In this document: piece after piece, positions 52,303-62,253 of the stretch
Layout of the letters: each line of letters opens with the position of its first letter
Position numbering within the stretch: position 1 is the first letter of the stretch
The notes under the pieces: model-generated
Seen by the model: only the letters and a program-made list of their open reading frames with translations
What the model was told of the DNA's origin: nothing
Databases searched by the model: none
Assembly: GCA_965637545.1 (NCBI GenBank)
Contig: OZ281497.1
Span: 15,314,001 to 15,378,000 of the forward strand
Reading direction: 5' to 3'
DNA length: 64,000 bases
Source of the DNA: Phallusia mammillata
Taxonomy: Eukaryota
Translations under genes and position numbers: made by a program

Positions 52303-54210
52303 ATGGTGCATGATTCACAACTTTGTTCCATACGATTTTTAACATCTTTTGCATTTTTTCACAATTTTACTACTACTGGTGCAACATGGTTTAAAAGTGT
52401 CTGAGACATGTTATTTTCATTCTCTGCTTAAAGTGTCTGAGACATGTATTTTTCATTCTCTATTTTCAAGCATTGTGTTTTAAACTTTCTTTCCTTGCAT
52501 TGTAATTTTCATGTTTCTTTTAGTTCGTACTTTAGCACACTGTAGCCTATTTTATTGCACCTATAGTTACAAGTTACTGTTCCAAAAGTTCCAAAAAAGT
52601 GAAATCTGCTCTTGTACTGTCTTATTCCGTTACTTTTTTGTCAACGGCCTCTTTTTTGACGATGGTAATGGAGAATTGCAAACTAATCACTTTGCTTAAC
52701 TCATACACGTACATTCATTTACACATTTTTATCCCAAACACATTTATTTGTTTCACTTATAGGTTGGGTAAAATGTGCTCCGTTTATACTCATCATAACG
52801 CACTTGCGTATTAACTACACAATTTCCCGCACTAAACCACTTGGTTTGAATGTTACGTACATATTACTGCATTTATTTACTGATATCATGGAAATTTTGA
52901 ATGTTTTTGCATTGGCGTCCCCGCAACCAGCACTGTTATGTGTTTTGGCATCCCTTTTTAATTTAAAACATACCATATACCAAAGCCTAACGTAATTTAA
53001 AGGTGCAATTTTTTATTTGTCTCTTCAGCATTTGTCGCTTTTCCTTATTAGCCAACATAGTTTTGTGCAATTAAAATTCAGTTGTCTAACTGAACCAATT
53101 TTACTTTTTTCACAAAAGTGTGCAAATTCCGGTTTTGTGTGAATCGAGCCCTAAACATCATTTGCTGCCCGTTTTTTAACGTGTTCCTTAGAAATGGGTA
53201 AATTATACATTAGGATGCCATCGACAAACTCTTGGGTTGTTGCTTTATAGTGTTACAACAAAGATGTTCGGTGTAATGTTACAACATCGCCACATAAAGT
53301 TAATACAACCGAATCAAGTGTTTTTAAGTAGAAAAGCCTAAACGGCTTATGCAGTGCCTGTTGGTTGCCGAGTCCAGCTGTACATTGGGACTTCTAAGAA
53401 TAGTTGTTGTTACACCCAGGGCGTTGAGGAAACCAACGTTGTCCACAGAACATAATAATTGTTTTTGTTAGATTGTTTAACTACAGTTGAAAAGTTTCCT
53501 GCGGTATATCACTTTTAGGCTTCAGTGATATACTTAGGATTAGTCGATCGCCTGTCCGGCACGCGGTAACTTTTTGTCCGATCTGGTTTGACCGTGGGCG
53601 ATGATATGCGGGATAACTTTGGGATGGTAAACAAAAGATTTCATCAGTAATGAATGTGGTAATCCGATTTTTTATTGATGGCTTTGCACATCGCGCTTGC
53701 AATTAGGTCCAAAAGAAAACCCGTACGTTTTTCAAACACCGATCTGTAATTAATCTCGTTTGACAGAAGTAGGCTAGTTGGCATGACGTATTCAATTCGA
53801 TTGTTCCTGTTTTGTTAAGGTAGTTAAAGGCAAATTATTCAGCATTCTTGTTGTCTCATTAGTCGCGTTGTGATTCCAATTAAACAGAAGCACTGTTTTG
53901 CAAAAGTCAGCGGTACTGTACCGTACTTCTGCAGGTCGCAACAAGCTTGTGTGACTCAGCAAATACAAATGGTGCTGAGGCTGGGCTAAAGTTTCAGGAG
54001 ACCAGACGCTCTGTTTAAGTCTGCACCTTTTTCGGGCGGCTTCAATTGAAAAGAAAACTTTAGTGGTGCAAAAGCGTGAAGCTGCCGGTAACAGACCTGT
54101 GACCAGTAACTGGGGCGCCGCCAAACCTTTGTGACTACTGTAGCAGCAGTAAGAACCTAGTAACACAATTTGATTTGCAGCAGGTTGTTTCAAGAAGATT
54201 GCCAAAGATA

Positions 54211-55451
54211 ATGGGAATTACATTTTATTCAAATGTTGTGAGCCCACCTTGCAGGGCAGTGTGGCTAACTTTAAAAACCCTTGGTTTGGAGTTCAAACTG
54301 CATGAGGTAAACTTTGCTGAAATGGAGCATAAAAGTCCGGAGTTTCTTGCCGTTAATCCGAGGGGCAAGATACCTGGGTTGAATGACAATGGATTTGTAC
54401 TGGGAGAAAGGTAGGTTATATAGCAGTGGTTCTCAAACTTTTTTGAGCGCGAGCCAAATCTGAGTTTTATAAACACCTCACGACCCAAGCCTCAAACAAC
54501 AAAAAATGTATTTTATTTCCTTGTACGAATACTTACTCATACTCTAACGCTAACTGTCACATGGCCAAGTTCAGTTAACGCAAGATTAACTTATCCTATT
54601 ATTTCCCGTGCTATGACGTTACAATCGCCATGTGCGAAACAGTATAGTGGGAAGGCTATATTGTGTGCGCCACCCATTTTTTTACCCGGTGCGACACATG
54701 TTTGGGTCGCGACCCATACTTTGAGAACCACTGTTATATAAATTAACTAAGATTTATTTATTATTTTTGTGTATACGGTAAAGTGTAAACGAAGATACTT
54801 TAACCTGTTTCTGTATTTATAGCCGTGCCATAATGCAATATTTGTGCAACAAATTCGAGAAAAAGAATGAAAACGAACTTTACCCGAAAGATCCCCAAGC
54901 CCGAGCGCTAGTTGATCAAATGCTTTACATAGATGTCGACGCAGTGGAAGAATTCTATTCTTACGTGGTATGTTGTCGACAATAAAGCATTCTAAAATGG
55001 GTTAACAATAATCTATAGTTTACAATTTTGTGCGCAGAAACCGTTTCAGGTGTTGTTTCTCGAACAAAAACCTGGCTTGGGTGAAGAATCAAAAATTCAA
55101 GACTACTTTAAGAAGCTCGAATGCTCTCTTTCAAAAAACAAGTTTTTAGCTGCCGACCACTTCACAATTGCTGGTAAGTAATTCGCTTTATAGTGTACCT
55201 GTGTTTGTTCTAGAAGCAGAATTGTCATCCATGTTTTTTTGGAAACTATTAGTTTTGCCTTTGTTGCCGCAGATTTCTCGGTGATAGCAAGCATCACCAT
55301 CTTGGATTTGTGTAAATACGACAACTTTGGCGAGTTCCCCAAATTAAAGAAGTGGATGGAGGCAATGAGGGCACTGCCAGGATTTGAGGAGTGTGTTGGA
55401 ACACATGTAAAAAGCGTGACTGCAATGTATCAAGGAAAGATCAACGCATAA
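54211..55451 (+). CDS. cytosolic glutathione S-transferase, Ser-type (theta/delta-like)
   Basis: Exons 54211-54410, 54823-54967, 55038-55173 and 55273-55451 give SPPCRAV, NPRGKIP, LGESRAIMQYL, LYPKDP..RA.VDQML, FLAADHFTIAD and FPKLKKW. Confidence 0.92.
54424..54733. mobile_element. hAT MITE in GST intron 1
   Basis: TIRs CAGTGGTTCTCAAA / TTTGAGAACCACTG; TSD TTATATA(G/A). Confidence 0.88.
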
Positions 55452-56255
55452 ACATTTGTGATTGGCTACCCAATAATCGCTTGTGTATCAAACTCTGTAA
55501 CACTTAATAAACGAAGTAGCCTAGCTGCCTATAGTGCTTGCCCTTGTTATACAATATACTGCAAATGTTTAAAATACTATGTCGGCCTTTGATGAAATAG
55601 GGCCGTTAACCGCATAAACAAAGGTTGTGCACCCTGTTCATAGATGATGTACCTAACCATGAGTGAAATAAACAAAGCTAAGTAACCTTGCGTTGTCCGG
55701 TTGATATTTTTGTGTAGGCACACAAGCCTTGGTAACGCGTTAGGCATGGTGTCCGTTGCATACATTTCGCAGTTCTCAATCTATTGAGAAAGAAACAAGT
55801 GACATGTGTGATGCAACCGTGCGTAGCGTGGAACGTAAAACATCAAATACAGGCCTAGGCTACCATACGCGGTTTGACTCAATTTGCTTCCTTGGACAAC
55901 AAGCCTTTAATTGAACCGATCCCGATAGCTTATAGCCTATGTTTGTTGGACGAATAATTTAACTGCTCAAACTTGAAATCATTTACAATAAATTGACTTG
56001 GCACAAGTTTATTGTCATCAGTGGTATTGTTAATTGTTATACCGGTGGCGATAGGGTATTTTGAGTCTGACCATAGAATTCTAAAAACATAGAAGGACCA
56101 CTGGGCTTCGTCACGCTTGAGTAAGACTGACGCGATCAGAAAAAGTGTCAACAGCGGCAGGCGACAAATAGGCTACTGTACCTGCTTTTTGCAGTGATGT
56201 CGGTTTATTTTATAACATTTTTTACCTTGTTAGCAGGAGCTTTACCTTAAAAAGT

Positions 56256-56969
56256 ATGTCGGGCAGTGAAATTACCGAAAAGTTGCTTTTGGAACTGTTT
56301 GACATTCCAGATCGACTCGACACAACTCCTGTCAGTGTCATGCAGTCCACATGCGAAAATACCCCTGATTTTGTAAAGCGTATTTTACCTGACAAAGTCA
56401 AAGTATCTCCTGCAGGGTATGAAGTTTTTACAAAATGGCTAGGTATGCATGCCAAATGCAACCAAGCAAGCATAATTATTGAAGAGTATCCAAAGTATTG
56501 TTGTGAGGCTCATATTTTATTTTTAAAATTGTCACAAATGGAAGCAGCAAAACAACTGTTACACTTAGTTAACGAAATTGTGCGTCATAAAGCAGAAAAG
56601 AAATTTCCACACCTACGATATATTATTCAACATTTGTACGATGCCAATGATGCAAATTCATCATTTCTTTGCATGCTTGAAAGAAAAATCGGATGTTTAA
56701 AAAGGCCATCAGAACATTTTACATTCTTCACAGACTATTTGTATTTAAATTTTAGCAAGGAATGCAACAAGAAACTTAGCACTATTAATTTTGATTCTGT
56801 GATTGTTTATGTATTTTCTGGTTCCCACTTTTTAAGGTTTACAGAAACTTTAAGTGACATGGCCAAATGTGACTATGAGCAAAGTGAAACAATTGTTACC
56901 TATATTGTCAAGCTTTTTATAAGGGTACTTGGTCACAGTTTTAGCAAAACAGTTCGAAAACATTTTTAG
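56256..56969 (+). CDS. second ORF of the P element, 237 aa, unknown; weakly resembles the P/THAP9 transposase C-terminal domain
   Basis: Long uninterrupted ORF in AT-rich DNA, wholly inside the TIRs, convergent with the transposase; contains SSFLCMLERKIGCLKRPS and IVKLFIRVLGHSFSK. Confidence 0.7.
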   Translation: MSGSEITEKLLLELFDIPDRLDTTPVSVMQSTCENTPDFVKRILPDKVKVSPAGYEVFTKWLGMHAKCNQASIIIEEYPKYCCEAHILFLKLSQMEAAKQLLHLVNEIVRHKAEKKFPHLRYIIQHLYDANDANSSFLCMLERKIGCLKRPSEHFTFFTDYLYLNFSKECNKKLSTINFDSVIVYVFSGSHFLRFTETLSDMAKCDYEQSETIVTYIVKLFIRVLGHSFSKTVRKHF

Positions 56970-57049
56970 AAAAGTAAACAAACAATCTTCTGGGTTGCGA
57001 GCAAGTTTTGCCACTACATCAAAATAACAAGGGTTGCAATAGCTGTAAA

Positions 57050-60000
57050 TTATTTATTTTTCTTTTGGAGTGGTTCATCACACAATTCTGTCCAGGCATT
57101 CTTTTTTCCAAATGTAGTGTTTCCCCCTTTAATTTTTTTTATTATTTTGCGTTGGGTTATGTGCTGCACCCCATATGACACCTGAAATATATCAGGGTTT
57201 CTGGCTCGATGTCCAAGTTGTCTCTAAATAAAATTACAAATTGTGTAACCGGTCTTCTGTTATTTATGCAAACAGCAACAAATAAGTTTACAATGTTTCC
57301 AAAAAATGCCTCCAACACATCTTGTGAAAAAGTGTGAAGGCACACATATTTGAATTTTTCTAAAAGCCTCTTTGCAAGAAAAATCAGATTTCTTGTTGTA
57401 AATACTAATCCTTCCAGTGTTGGACGGGCCATAATTCTTTTCGTCTCACCCTTGTGGTGTTTTTCTATATCATTCTACATAAATAAAACATTGAGGTGAT
57501 GAACTGAGGACACCAATGGGAATAACATCACAGGGACTAAGAGTTAACATAATCTTCATGCAGAAAGTTAGGTAACTATTATATTGTTTTGTTAATGTTG
57601 TCAGAGTACTACATAAATGAAAAGACCTTCCAAGCAATAAGCTCTTCAATAAACACATTTTGTAGCCATAACAATCGAGAGTCTTCTGGATTGCGAATTG
57701 GACACTTGACGCCACAATTTACTATGTCGAACCACCTACAAGTGCAAACAAGCCTATTGTAAATAACCTCCATATAACAAATGGATCCAAATGTTATATT
57801 GGTTTAACAAGTTGGTACAGTAATGTACTTACTTAGCAAAAAGAAGGATGCAATCAGCAGTTCCAGATGTGTTGGAGTTAGCAAGCAAACACTGCCCTAC
57901 TCTCCAACTTAATATATCTCGAGCCAAGTTTACCTTCATCTGTATGATAAACTGCTTACTTATGTGGTTATGCAGTCATAGCATATTAATTACCTTTGTA
58001 CATGAATTCAATTGAATATGAGCCAAGCTTAAGTTAGTTTTTCTGAGCACAGGCATATCCTTGTCGGTATTATACAATTCTACAACATGGGTTCATAAAA
58101 TATCTTTTCCATTCCTGTTCATGTACTTTGATCCACCAGGTTTTGAAGAAAATAAACTGTTTCTTGCAGTCTGTAAAAAAAGGCAGGCATGAAAAAATAT
58201 CCAGTTGGAGTATACTTGTTGCTTACTTTTAACAAATGTGAAGGATCCGAACATAAATAAACAGGACGACTTGGACAAATCGGATTAGGTCCATGCAGTG
58301 GTTCCAACAAACTTATTTCTTTTTTTCCACTAATCAATTTAAAAAACTGTCGATTTGTAGCCATTCCATCAGCAATAACTGCATGGATCTGCAAACCTCT
58401 AGACTCGCATTCCAACAAAATTTTCCAAAATATTAAGGCCAGAGCTGGTGCAGGGGTAACTTTGGTTGGATACCACGCTATAGGCAGTGAAACTTTTCGT
58501 TTGACTGTTCTCACAAAAAACACTAAAACAGGATGAGTTTTAAAATCATGTTTAAGAACCTAAAATTTTCATTTCAAAGTAAACACTTGCCCAAAACATG
58601 TGTTGCAATATCATTGCTTAAGTCAGCTCCAGAGTAGTCCAGGTCAACAAACCCAACCAGTTTGTTGTCCTTCATGACAAGGTTTTCTTTTACTGCAAAA
58701 TCATAGATCAGTAAAAATGTTTATTTGGCATACACCAAAATAAAACATACTTTTCATTTCATCCAGTGTGAGAAATCCAACTAACTCAGAGACCGAGGTT
58801 GATACCCTTTCTATCTCATCAAGAGACATTTGATTAATTCCAGGCTGAGGCTTTATAAAATTACTACACAAAAGTATAATAAATATTTTGCTGTCCCTTA
58901 ACAAACTGCAACTTTACCGGTAACGCTTGATGGTTGTTGGGGAAGGCAAAGTCAAAACATCGGAGGCACGTATATGTTCATATGCTGCTGGCGACCGGCA
59001 ATAAAATTCAATGCACCATCGTACTAAATCTGGATGGTAACGGCGAGCATTAGGTGGCAGTGTTATGTTCAATAACTGTTGCTTTAAAAACATTTCTTTC
59101 CAAGGATTGGTGTTCTGCAAAATGCAATTAATTGTTATTATTACTGTTTAATAGGTAACTAGCTTCATATAGTGTACTTGTTTAACTTGTGAGTCATCAT
59201 CTTCTAGCAAAAGTGATTCACTTTGAATTTCAACGCACTCAGGACATGTTGCATTTTTCTTGCAAGCTAGAATTATAACATATCTTGATACAATCTGAAA
59301 ATACATACGAAACAATATACACTTACCAATTAATCTACAGTTTGTTGCCCTAAATACATTTTTAATTTTGATTGATCCATTTTCCCATGTAAGAATAGGA
59401 TGAACTTTTGTGTTCTTAACTTCTTCTTGTACTCCACTACAGGGAGTCAGATTGGAAATTTCATCTACATATTGTTTGTAGAAAAGCAGTTGGTCATAAT
59501 ATACAAAAATAAGTTAGCTACAGATTGCAAACACTTTTTCAAGTAGTAGTGTCTCATCAGTGCAACTGGTGACAACACAGATTTATGTTGTTCAGATTTA
59601 AATGACCAAAGCAAAAATTGGAAACTTACCTAATACTTTACTTAGTGCAACTTGTTGGGCATCAGGAAGAGGTACTGATCCCAAATCAACTTTCCACCCA
59701 TCTACAGACAACTCTGCAATTTTTGCATTTAATGCAAAAACAACCCTAACAGTGTGAAAATTAATTCTGATTAGTACTTTTTTGGGGTAAAAACTTGCCT
59801 AAACTTTTACCTTAAATGAGGAACTAGTTGTGCCTCTACATGTAATTCTGACACCAAGTTGTTTCCTTTCTCATAAAATATCCATTTTTCTGAAAATGAA
59901 TCTGCATTATTAACTACTTTTACTGACATGGCACCTGGCAGACTAACAGCTGGCCTCTCTAACCTTTTAAAAACTCAGGTAGTTGTTTAAAAGACTTCTG

Positions 60001-60475
60001 TAAGTCAACAATATTCTTGTGTCTTTTTCTGGGCTCTTCTGCAACTCTTGCCACTGGTGGCTTTCTAGGTGGATGGGTAAAACTTGACTTTTTTGGTAAA
60101 TGTAAACATGGTTTAGCACCCTGGCAAAGAGTCTTGAATTTGCCATGAACAACAATATCTGTTGGCATAAAGTGCAACTCACAAATTGCTGCCCTGTGAT
60201 GAAAAATACTGACATTGACTGATATTACGATTTTTTTGCATATTCATGGCAATTTACGTTTCTTTTTGTAGCATTTCTTTAATGCAATCACCAGAGGCTG
60301 CATCTCTCATGGACAGCACAAACCTTGTAAGCTGCTCTCTGTGGGCTTTTTCTGCTGAGCTTTTGGCAAGAGCCGGTTTTCGGACAGCAAAAATTGAAAC
60401 TTTGCGTTCGTTCTTAATTTTAGAATTTCTGACGCCTGAAATACAGCCAGGCACACAGCAATGACTAGGCGCCAT
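57050..60475 (-). pseudogene. THAP-domain P-element transposase, 15 exons, one in-frame stop
   Basis: Hand splicing gives THAP (CCVPGC...ICELHF...AKPCL), RSPAAYEHIR...LPSPTTIKR, the catalytic motifs LTLDEMK, IADGMATN, SDPSHLLK and SQDVLEAFFGNIRQLG...NP, and KMKVNLA. Single TGA at 58093-58095 where Trp is expected. Confidence 0.9.
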
Positions 60476-60626
60476 GATTTATATTTACACTTTTCGAGCG
60501 ACCAAACAGACAACAGGTACTAAAGTAACGAGAAAACTCGCGGTATCGTGTCAGTCTTACTCATGCGGAACGAGACGCAAGAACAATGAGTGGTCCTTCT
60601 ATGTTTTTAGAATTCTATGGTCTGAC

Positions 60627-60656
60627 CATAGATTACTTACCAGTAAGTTATCTATG
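60627..60656. mobile_element. 30-bp P-type remnant (excision footprint or micro-MITE)
   Basis: CATAGATTACTTACCAGTAAGTTATCTATG, a near-perfect hairpin with CATAG...CTATG ends, flanked by GTCTGAC at 60620-60626 and 60657-60663. Confidence 0.85.
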
Positions 60657-60885
60657 GTCTGACAAGCGCAGTAGTTCCAAAAACTAGTACCAAAAAAAAA
60701 ATCCGGATCGATTTGGCATAGGAAGGAGTTTCAATCTTTTTCCAGTTGGACAAAAAATATGCTTTGCTGTGCAGCAAATCATGCGTGTTAAACCAATCAA
60801 GTGAATCGTTTTAATATACCGCATACATTTTGCACTGTGATGATTTTATCATAAAGTAACGGCAAGTCAAGGTAAATCAATCCTA

Positions 60886-62253
60886 ATGATGGAAAGTTTA
60901 GACAACGTAGTTGTGACTGAAGTCACTGACGAAAATATTCAACAGCTATGGGATTCAATCCTGGCCAACATGCAAGAAGCATCTTTTATTGCCATTGATG
61001 CCGAAATGAGCGGTCTTGGGGATAAATCAGGCACTATGCATCCTAACATTGACCAGCGATATACTTCCTTATGTTCAGGAGCACGTTCTCATTCTGTAAT
61101 ATCTTTGGGTATGGCTTGTTTTAAAATGTGTACAAACAGCAGTAATAGCAATGATTGTTCTGCAAACATTATCAAATCTTGTGTTGTTGTGTACAATTTC
61201 GTTCTTTTATGTGCTGAACCATATACAATTGACCCAACTGCAGTAAAGTTTCTGATAGAACATGGCTTTAACTTTAACAAACAATTTGCAAATGGGCTTC
61301 CTTATAAAAAGGGAAATGACAAACCAGATTATGATCCTAAACAGCATTCAATTAGAAGTTTATTTTCAGAGTTGCTTTGCCTAAGAAAACCATTAGTTCT
61401 TCATAATGGTTTCACAGATCTAATTTTTCTTTATCAGTCTTTTTATGCGGATTGTCCATCAAAACTCTCTGCATTTATGGCAGATTTATCAGAAATGTTT
61501 CCAGCTGGGATATATGACACCAAATACATAACTGAGTTTGTTGATCATGCATCTGCCTCATATTTGTTGTATGTGTTCAAGCTTGCTTGTTTAAAAAATA
61601 CTGATCAGAAAAAAGGAAATAAGACATCACTAAATGTTGAATTTGTTGAGCATAATAACCATAGTGTGTTGGTTTCCATGAACTGTGATGTAAAACACAA
61701 AGCAGAGAAAAGTAATGATGTATGTATGAAGTTCGCTGCTTATGGATGGTGCATCAAGGGTACTGCATGTTCCAAAAGCCACAACACTGATGAAATTATC
61801 AAATTTCACATGCAAAAGTCAGGCAACCGCAAAAGAAAGAATCAAGTTGAAAGTGCTTTAAATGAAACTATAAAGAAAAAGAAAGAAGAAAGTGATCTCA
61901 CTAAATGTGAGTTCCAAAAGAACAATGAAATAGAAAAGAATGATTCAAAAGGACCAAAGACATCAAATTCTTCTCAAGGCCACAGATCTGGTACTGATGC
62001 ATTCATGACTGGTTACACATTTGCCATGTTGGTTGTTTCTCATGCACAACAAATGCCTGAAGAAACAGCCAACCCAAACAAAATTGGTGTTTATTCAAAT
62101 GCTATACCTTTTCTACCCCAAGATCTACAAAAATCAATCATAAACAAACTGTACCTAAGTGGTAAAAATATTCCCTTGCAAGTGTGCAAAAGCAGTTTTA
62201 CAAAAACTTCTAAAAATCATACTGAAAAAATCATTCGAGTGTATTTGAGTTAA
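60886..62253 (+). CDS. TOE1: Target of EGR1 protein 1 (CAF1-family DEDD deadenylase with CCCH zinc finger)
   Basis: IAIDAEMSGLG, LVLHNGFTDL, GIYDTKY, C-x8-C-x5-C-x3-H finger (CMKFAAYGWCIKGTACSKSH), basic RKRK, HRSGTDAFMTGY, NKLYLSGK. Confidence 0.93.
   Translation: MMESLDNVVVTEVTDENIQQLWDSILANMQEASFIAIDAEMSGLGDKSGTMHPNIDQRYTSLCSGARSHSVISLGMACFKMCTNSSNSNDCSANIIKSCVVVYNFVLLCAEPYTIDPTAVKFLIEHGFNFNKQFANGLPYKKGNDKPDYDPKQHSIRSLFSELLCLRKPLVLHNGFTDLIFLYQSFYADCPSKLSAFMADLSEMFPAGIYDTKYITEFVDHASASYLLYVFKLACLKNTDQKKGNKTSLNVEFVEHNNHSVLVSMNCDVKHKAEKSNDVCMKFAAYGWCIKGTACSKSHNTDEIIKFHMQKSGNRKRKNQVESALNETIKKKKEESDLTKCEFQKNNEIEKNDSKGPKTSNSSQGHRSGTDAFMTGYTFAMLVVSHAQQMPEETANPNKIGVYSNAIPFLPQDLQKSIINKLYLSGKNIPLQVCKSSFTKTSKNHTEKIIRVYLS

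Follow-up and report, generated by a model that had tools for sequence, protein, structure and literature searches.

A very likely excision footprint of one P-like transposon family beside a resident P element of another family in the ascidian Phallusia mammillata

The window analysed here, a 64,000-nt stretch of the Phallusia mammillata genome (assembly GCA_965637545.1, contig OZ281497.1, positions 15,314,001 to 15,378,000 of the forward strand), carries a GST gene (54175-55451) and a single-exon gene of the CAF1 ribonuclease family (60886..62253, plus strand; PF04857, E 1.5e-61), and within the 0.84-kb spacer from the one to the other the heptamer GTCTGAC occurs three times in direct contact with transposon ends. 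The first target-site copy (56065..56071) lies to the left of a 4548-bp family A P-type transposon, here element A (56072..60619, transposase exons on the minus strand), which is bounded by perfect 31-bp TIRs (56072..56102 and 60589..60619). The second copy (60620..60626) is common to element A and to a unique 30-mer (60627-60656), and the third (60657..60663) closes the arrangement about 222 bp upstream of the ribonuclease ATG (60886). All three copies are identical, and the order of target, P element, target, short insert and target is the one that the original prediction had read from the letters. GTCTGAC by itself is not rare in the window (6 occurrences versus 3.8 expected), so the evidence lies in the exact abutment of the three copies to element ends and not in their count. 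The position near the start of the CAF1-family gene agrees with the preference of fly P elements for 5′ ends of genes (PMC2577343). The arrangement is not an assembly artefact, because contigs from public sequencing runs cross both junctions: an 11.9-kb contig of run X12, which may be the same sample as the assembly source, extends without any difference from 60593, inside the end of element A, through the TSD, the 30-mer and the next TSD into the flank, and another run contig spans the left junction of element A (55700-56097).

Element A is a P-type transposon, as it combines a P/THAP9-type transposase RNase H-like domain with TIRs and a 7-bp TSD, within the class range of 7-9 bp. On the exon, the TNP-like RNase H N-domain (PF21787) reaches 25.1 bits, and in a six-frame genome scan the same domain has 31.5 bits at window 58335-58535 (C4:15372335-15372535); the HTH domain of P transposases (PF12017) stays at 19.9 bits on the exons, under the cut-off of 23. 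A THAP-like pattern is discernible by eye, its C-X2-C in exon 1 (from 60475 downwards) and its C-X2-H, with an F behind it, in the second exon; Pfam yields no THAP match for the exons taken one by one. The window copy shares 97-98% identity with two full-length sister copies (L032, L033), and these two and a third near-full copy on C5 are likewise flanked by 7-bp TSDs (CCGGGAC, CTTTGAC and ATTAAAC). Given this level of identity and the perfect TIRs and TSDs, the P-like elements of this genome appear young. The window copy is without 84 bp near 56586-56588 that are present in L032, L033 and a contig of run X3, and this deletion falls within a plus-strand ORF (56256-56969). A rearranged family A copy at C8:8912029-8920154 (L035, L039, L048, L056) is broken by several insertions, one of which is a family C element with its entry point about 40 bp from the A end, recalling the good P targets held by fly P ends (PMC2577343).

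The 30-mer contains nothing except TIR-end sequence and lies between intact target copies, as a P-type footprint would. Its left arm (60627..60642, plus strand) equals the first 16 nt of the ‘left’ end of a second family, B, and its right arm (60642..60656, minus strand) equals the outermost 15 nt of the opposite, ‘right’ end of that family, in a variant with A at position 8; the A at 60642 is common to both arms. The original prediction of about 15 nt from each TIR end thus named the right kind of arms but not their exact lengths, which are 16 and 15 nt with 1 nt shared rather than 15 and 15. The arms are complementary at 13 of 15 positions, and at position 8, where they disagree (T versus A), the two ends of the source elements genuinely differ. 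As had also been proposed, the sequence departs from the TIR of the large element beyond a shared start, and its 6 differences within positions 7-16 show that it was not derived from element A. Within the window the 30-mer occurs once, even at 3 mismatches, and it is matched in 0 of 100 shuffles.

Longer elements with the TIR of the 30-mer, whose existence the original prediction made a check on itself, are indeed present. The first 14-mer of the 30-mer has 34 exact matches in the genome, some of which are the ends of family B elements of 1.9-2.8 kb with 7-bp TSDs, exemplified by copies of 2760 bp (C4:11635993-11638752, TSD GTTTTAC), 2438 bp (C5:15167764-15170201, TSD GTCAAAC) and 1856 bp (C1:35286224-35288079). 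Both arms are reproduced by the ends of this last copy: positions 1-16 of the 30-mer match its left end (L003), positions 16-30 match its right end, and the A at position 16 belongs to both. The two family B ends diverge after position 14 (C or T), and in a subfamily A replaces T at position 8 of one end. Family B copies contain no long open frame, and a tblastn search with all family A open frames against three B copies returned no similarity, so we regard family B as non-autonomous; no autonomous family B copy was found. Judging from its 7-bp TSD, its target motif and the match of 12 of the first 13 TIR bases to those of a third family, C, family B is probably P-type as well, and a P-type transposase would presumably be what moves it. 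Family C has 102 intact ends in the genome, which pair at about 2.4-2.6 kb and about 5-5.4 kb; several copies of about 5.3 kb contain PF21787 matches about 2.3-2.8 kb from an end, and this P-transposase RNase H domain within the long copies marks family C as an autonomous P family.

The 30-mer belongs to a genome-wide series. We identified at least 26 two-armed remnants of 22-39 bp from three P-like families, about half of the sites belonging to family C. A gapped pattern of 10 nt from each end matched 20 B/C sites with total lengths of 22-35 bp, compared to 0 for a reversed-pattern control, and the exact 30-mer accounts for a single one of these 20 sites in 240 Mb; no remnant with a total length of 41-70 bp was found in the genome search. 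Direct repeats of 7 bp flank all 15 of the 20 B/C sites that were inspected (13 perfect, 2 matching at 6 of 7 positions), this inspection having covered, among the family A remnants, the C1:8881103 site only. Family A has scars of its own, a 28-mer (17/18 + 11) present at three sites and a 39-mer present at C2:8481449 and again on the small contig C256. Throughout the 26 remnants the arms are invariant, and the centres differ in junction position, microhomology and filler. The search for similar remnants that had been suggested therefore produced about two dozen of them, differing at their centres, and the many identical dispersed 30-bp copies that would have pointed to a mobile element are absent. 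Some remnant sequences recur at two or three sites, for which recurrent repair outcomes would account and mobility would too.

The scar census is a lower bound, since one-sided remnants also occur. Three family B cases (L004, L014, L018, positions 1501-1530) preserve 14-15 nt of one TIR with the other arm gone, and the target copy, minus its first G, comes directly after the TIR piece. At least six dispersed copies of the family B 14-mer share an identical flank (L009, L010, L012, L013, L015, L028, at about position 1501-1514), with GTAATAC before the 14-mer and again 34 nt later; this may be an old one-sided scar carried by another repeat family.

Matching each remnant to the intact ends of real copies provides the arm lengths, and these stop sharply. 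The longer arm measures 18 nt in 10 remnants, 17 nt in 1, at most 16 nt in 14 and 23 nt in 1, with none of the 26 having a longer arm of 19-22 nt. In 8 of the 10 cases with 18 nt the last base can be assigned to the other arm, making the arm 17 or 18 nt long; one remnant reads 17 + G + 11. A length of 18 nt, or of 17 nt with a matching filler base, is required in three remnants, namely a 34-mer (16 + 18), the longer scar at the L063 locus and a one-sided family A remnant whose 18 nt adjoin a target copy directly. The data favour 18 nt slightly over 17, and since the statistical backing of this preference is weak (about 0.1 from the unambiguous cases, about 0.01 from the partner-arm argument), we state the cut as 17-18 nt. 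Arms that end abruptly at this length, in two families whose TIR interiors are unrelated, are as predicted for a long P-type stagger with subsequent end joining, and these sequence data suggest that the P-like transposases of this chordate would cleave 17-18 nt inside the TIR. The sole exception is the 23-nt arm of the family A 39-mer, which exceeds a 17-18-nt overhang and needs templated synthesis. At 16 and 15 nt, the arms of the window 30-mer are within the length of the 17-nt Drosophila stagger. Regarding the claim that the unusual cleavage, with its 17-nt stagger and its scar, is conserved here, the abrupt end of the arms at 17-18 nt speaks in its favour, but the exact figure of 17 is the slightly less favoured of the two.

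Taken together, the 30-mer is very probably the excision scar of a non-autonomous P-like B element, located beside a family A P element in the same target. The original prediction is thus confirmed in what it observed and supported, as to its interpretation, on every main point. We infer the cleavage chemistry, the repair pathway, the transposase that acted on B and the succession of events along the following lines. A family B element, with a TIR starting CATAGATTACTTAC and with A at position 8 of its other end, would have inserted at GTCTGAC and duplicated the 7-bp target. A P-type transposase would then have excised it, with a cut at the element tip on the 3′ strand and another 17-18 nt into the TIR on the 5′ strand, which would leave each flank with a 3′ overhang of TIR sequence. 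Host end joining may have trimmed these overhangs to 16 and 15 nt and joined them at the common A, yielding the 30-mer between two target copies. Separately, the 4.5-kb family A element would have entered the left target copy and duplicated it, which would produce the third GTCTGAC. The target has the same letters in all three copies at this locus, and the insertion of A may have come before, during or after the residence of B.

Could the remnant be an extreme internal deletion, left by interrupted template-directed gap repair and hence uninformative on the position of the cut? Internal deletions of Drosophila P elements do form by interrupted gap repair, and the 39-bp family A remnant with its 23-nt arm needs some templated synthesis. 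Gap repair would, however, be expected to leave a broad range of sizes, yet there is no remnant of 41-70 bp and no arm of 19-22 nt, and the arms pile up at 17-18 nt in two families of different sequence; we therefore consider this origin unlikely for the window scar. A still smaller probability attaches to the 30-mer being a mobile micro-MITE, two minimal TIRs that inserted on their own, even though it has inverted ends and perfect 7-bp TSDs and a few other remnants are identical at two or three sites. Rather than existing as dispersed near-identical copies with substitutions, as a MITE would, the exact 30-mer is unique in 240 Mb, and its relatives differ only at the central junction. The constant arms of the 26 remnants, with centres that vary by junction and filler, show variation of the repair type and not of the substitution type, and the recurrent remnants are what a full-length overhang or an AATT microhomology should yield. 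In addition, Drosophila P requires more than 100 bp at each end, internal transposase sites included (also cited in PMC1562414). That a chance palindrome or an assembly artefact merely happens to lie beside a single P insertion would be helped by the frequency of GTCTGAC in the window; this idea, the least probable of the three, is already refuted by the shuffles, which give no match, by the arms, which exactly match real element ends, by an independent run contig that bridges the whole junction, and by the 20 analogous sites against 0 in the control.

The excision scar and element A share a target, and this sharing is not peculiar to the window. From 22 reconstructed empty sites we obtained a palindromic target, GTNNNAC, in which positions 2 and 6 show T and A, respectively, in 41 of 44 symmetrised counts each and the outer positions show G or C in 29 of 44; the motif amounts to only about 6 bits. 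The window locus displays the hallmark of a double insertion, two P-type events one TSD apart with three target copies. At C1:22715211-22715295 (L063:1452-1536), three CTAAAAT copies alternate with two family C scars, the first of 35 bp with filler and the second of 29 bp; here one target has served for two insertions, and neither element is present any longer. Two intact family C elements of 1719 bp and 5229 bp (C7:16706776-16713730) stand exactly 7 bp apart (ATTTAAG, 16708495-16708501), which looks like the unexcised form of a double insertion. At C1:8881096-8881162, CTGGAAC is present at least three times and sets apart a B/C-type end, an A scar of 28 bp and a one-sided A remnant of 18 nt; this site (C1:8881089-8881168) sits in a repeat of about 111 copies that holds the palindrome CTGGAGCTGCAGTTCCAG. 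Under generous assumptions, chance coincidence of two events per site would be expected 0.003-0.9 times genome-wide, versus at least 4 observed. The view that two different families used the same 7-bp target is supported, and the other sites hit several times show that such use is repeated. Two things would favour this reuse, the preference of these elements for a palindromic GTNNNAC site and the continued suitability, as a target, of the copy beside a P end.

Such reuse has precedents in flies. The singed-weak allele carries a double P insertion, and in the ‘restored target site’ model the TIR tips restore the target (Linheiro and Bergman 2008, PMC2577343); from the fly data, the same authors predicted that the copy of the target next to a P end already in place stays, or turns into, a favoured site of insertion. 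For a restoration of the flanking motif by the CATA tip, the flank signal from our 22 sites is too weak to judge. As in singed-weak, a second P-type insertion in Phallusia lies in the target copy by a resident P end, one TSD apart and with the target in three copies; unlike singed-weak, the window locus involves different families, one partner having since been excised. The Phallusia sites show that reuse of this kind, known from singed-weak and predicted from the fly data, is conserved in this chordate.

Footprints of Drosophila P elements resemble the scars described here in keeping both target copies, up to about 17 nt of each TIR, and variable junctions with microhomology or filler; they differ from them in a TSD of 8 rather than 7 bp, in the host, here a tunicate, and possibly in the arm limit, which may be 18 nt in Phallusia, and our material consists of genomic scars and not of biochemistry. 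After Tc1/mariner excision, too, transposon-end nucleotides stay between the target copies. Tc1/mariner scars retain only 2-3 nt per end, and the arms of 15-18 nt seen here do not fit that chemistry. The 17-nt staggered donor cleavage of Drosophila P is described as distinctive (Beall and Rio 1997, as cited in PMC7776569 and PMC10983969), and in the literature that we searched a long staggered cut has been mapped only for the Drosophila P transposase (PMC7776569, PMC10983969); the same searches returned no stagger mapping for vertebrate THAP9 or for P branches with a 7-bp TSD. Among the latter, Galileo, with the 7-bp target GTANTAC (PMC4168063), and 1360/Hoppel share with the Phallusia families the 7-bp TSD and a palindromic GT..AC consensus, here GTNNNAC (PMC4168063, PMC3698922); both are insect elements, unlike the families described here, and Galileo has very long TIRs. 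No report on the cleavage stagger or the footprints of Galileo or 1360/Hoppel was found in the literature searched. P-like elements of another ascidian, Ciona intestinalis (Kimbacher et al. 2009, as cited in PMC7776569), are similar in that they are transposons encoding a P transposase.

The mechanism itself is already known from the P element, and it is the extension to chordate P families with a 7-bp TSD that is new evidence: a known mechanism in a new lineage and not a new kind of system. Both the long stagger and the reuse of targets would thereby extend to P families of a chordate, with a hint that the stagger may be 18 nt. A stricter version, which we put forward as speculative and more likely wrong than right, is that the P-type transposases of ascidians place their cut 18 nt into the TIR and make a 7-bp target stagger, and that a target copy by a P end or scar acts as a homing site across P families. 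The sum of 18 and 7 is 25, as is that of 17 and 8 in Drosophila P, which hints at a fixed geometry of donor and target cleavage in the P transpososome. As the elements look young, ascidian P elements could become a second experimental system for P cleavage chemistry.

Neither an empty nor an occupied version of the window locus was directly observed, and some traces in public reads may stem from other alleles of it. In runs X1 and X4, a contig of the left flank breaks off at 56077, after which the A TIR and the 30-mer diverge, and X4 also contains a right-flank contig with 13 unaligned letters just before 60642, the start of the 15-nt right arm; these contig ends, which are suggestive only, could come from an allele that lacks A, and perhaps from one in which B is still present. 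A contig of run X3 that joins a full A TIR to a flank ending in GTTCCAG was considered as the occupied allele of the C1:8881103 scar and set aside, since its flank is a repeat with 111 copies and does not point to any one site. Indel variants of the 30-mer in reads (3 nt out at 60639 and 2 nt at 60643) were likewise discarded as alleles, since both flanks are unlike the window locus, and we read them as scars of other loci.

Beyond families A, B and C, the genome holds further P-like sequences. The genome scan for the P-transposase RNase H domain yielded 83 matches, several of them full-length (about 159 bits) and in uninterrupted frames of 531-744 aa; those at C3:17509267-17509677, C3:17562131-17562541 and C6:6995743-6996153 are P/THAP9-like genes that are poor in introns and separate from families A and C. 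At C2:7049317-7053019 (L045, about position 1494, minus strand) lies a diverged relative of family A with 67-73% identity; its TIR begins CATAAAATTCTAAAC next to the flank CTGTAAC, which makes it a fourth family of P-like TIRs, again with a target of this type.
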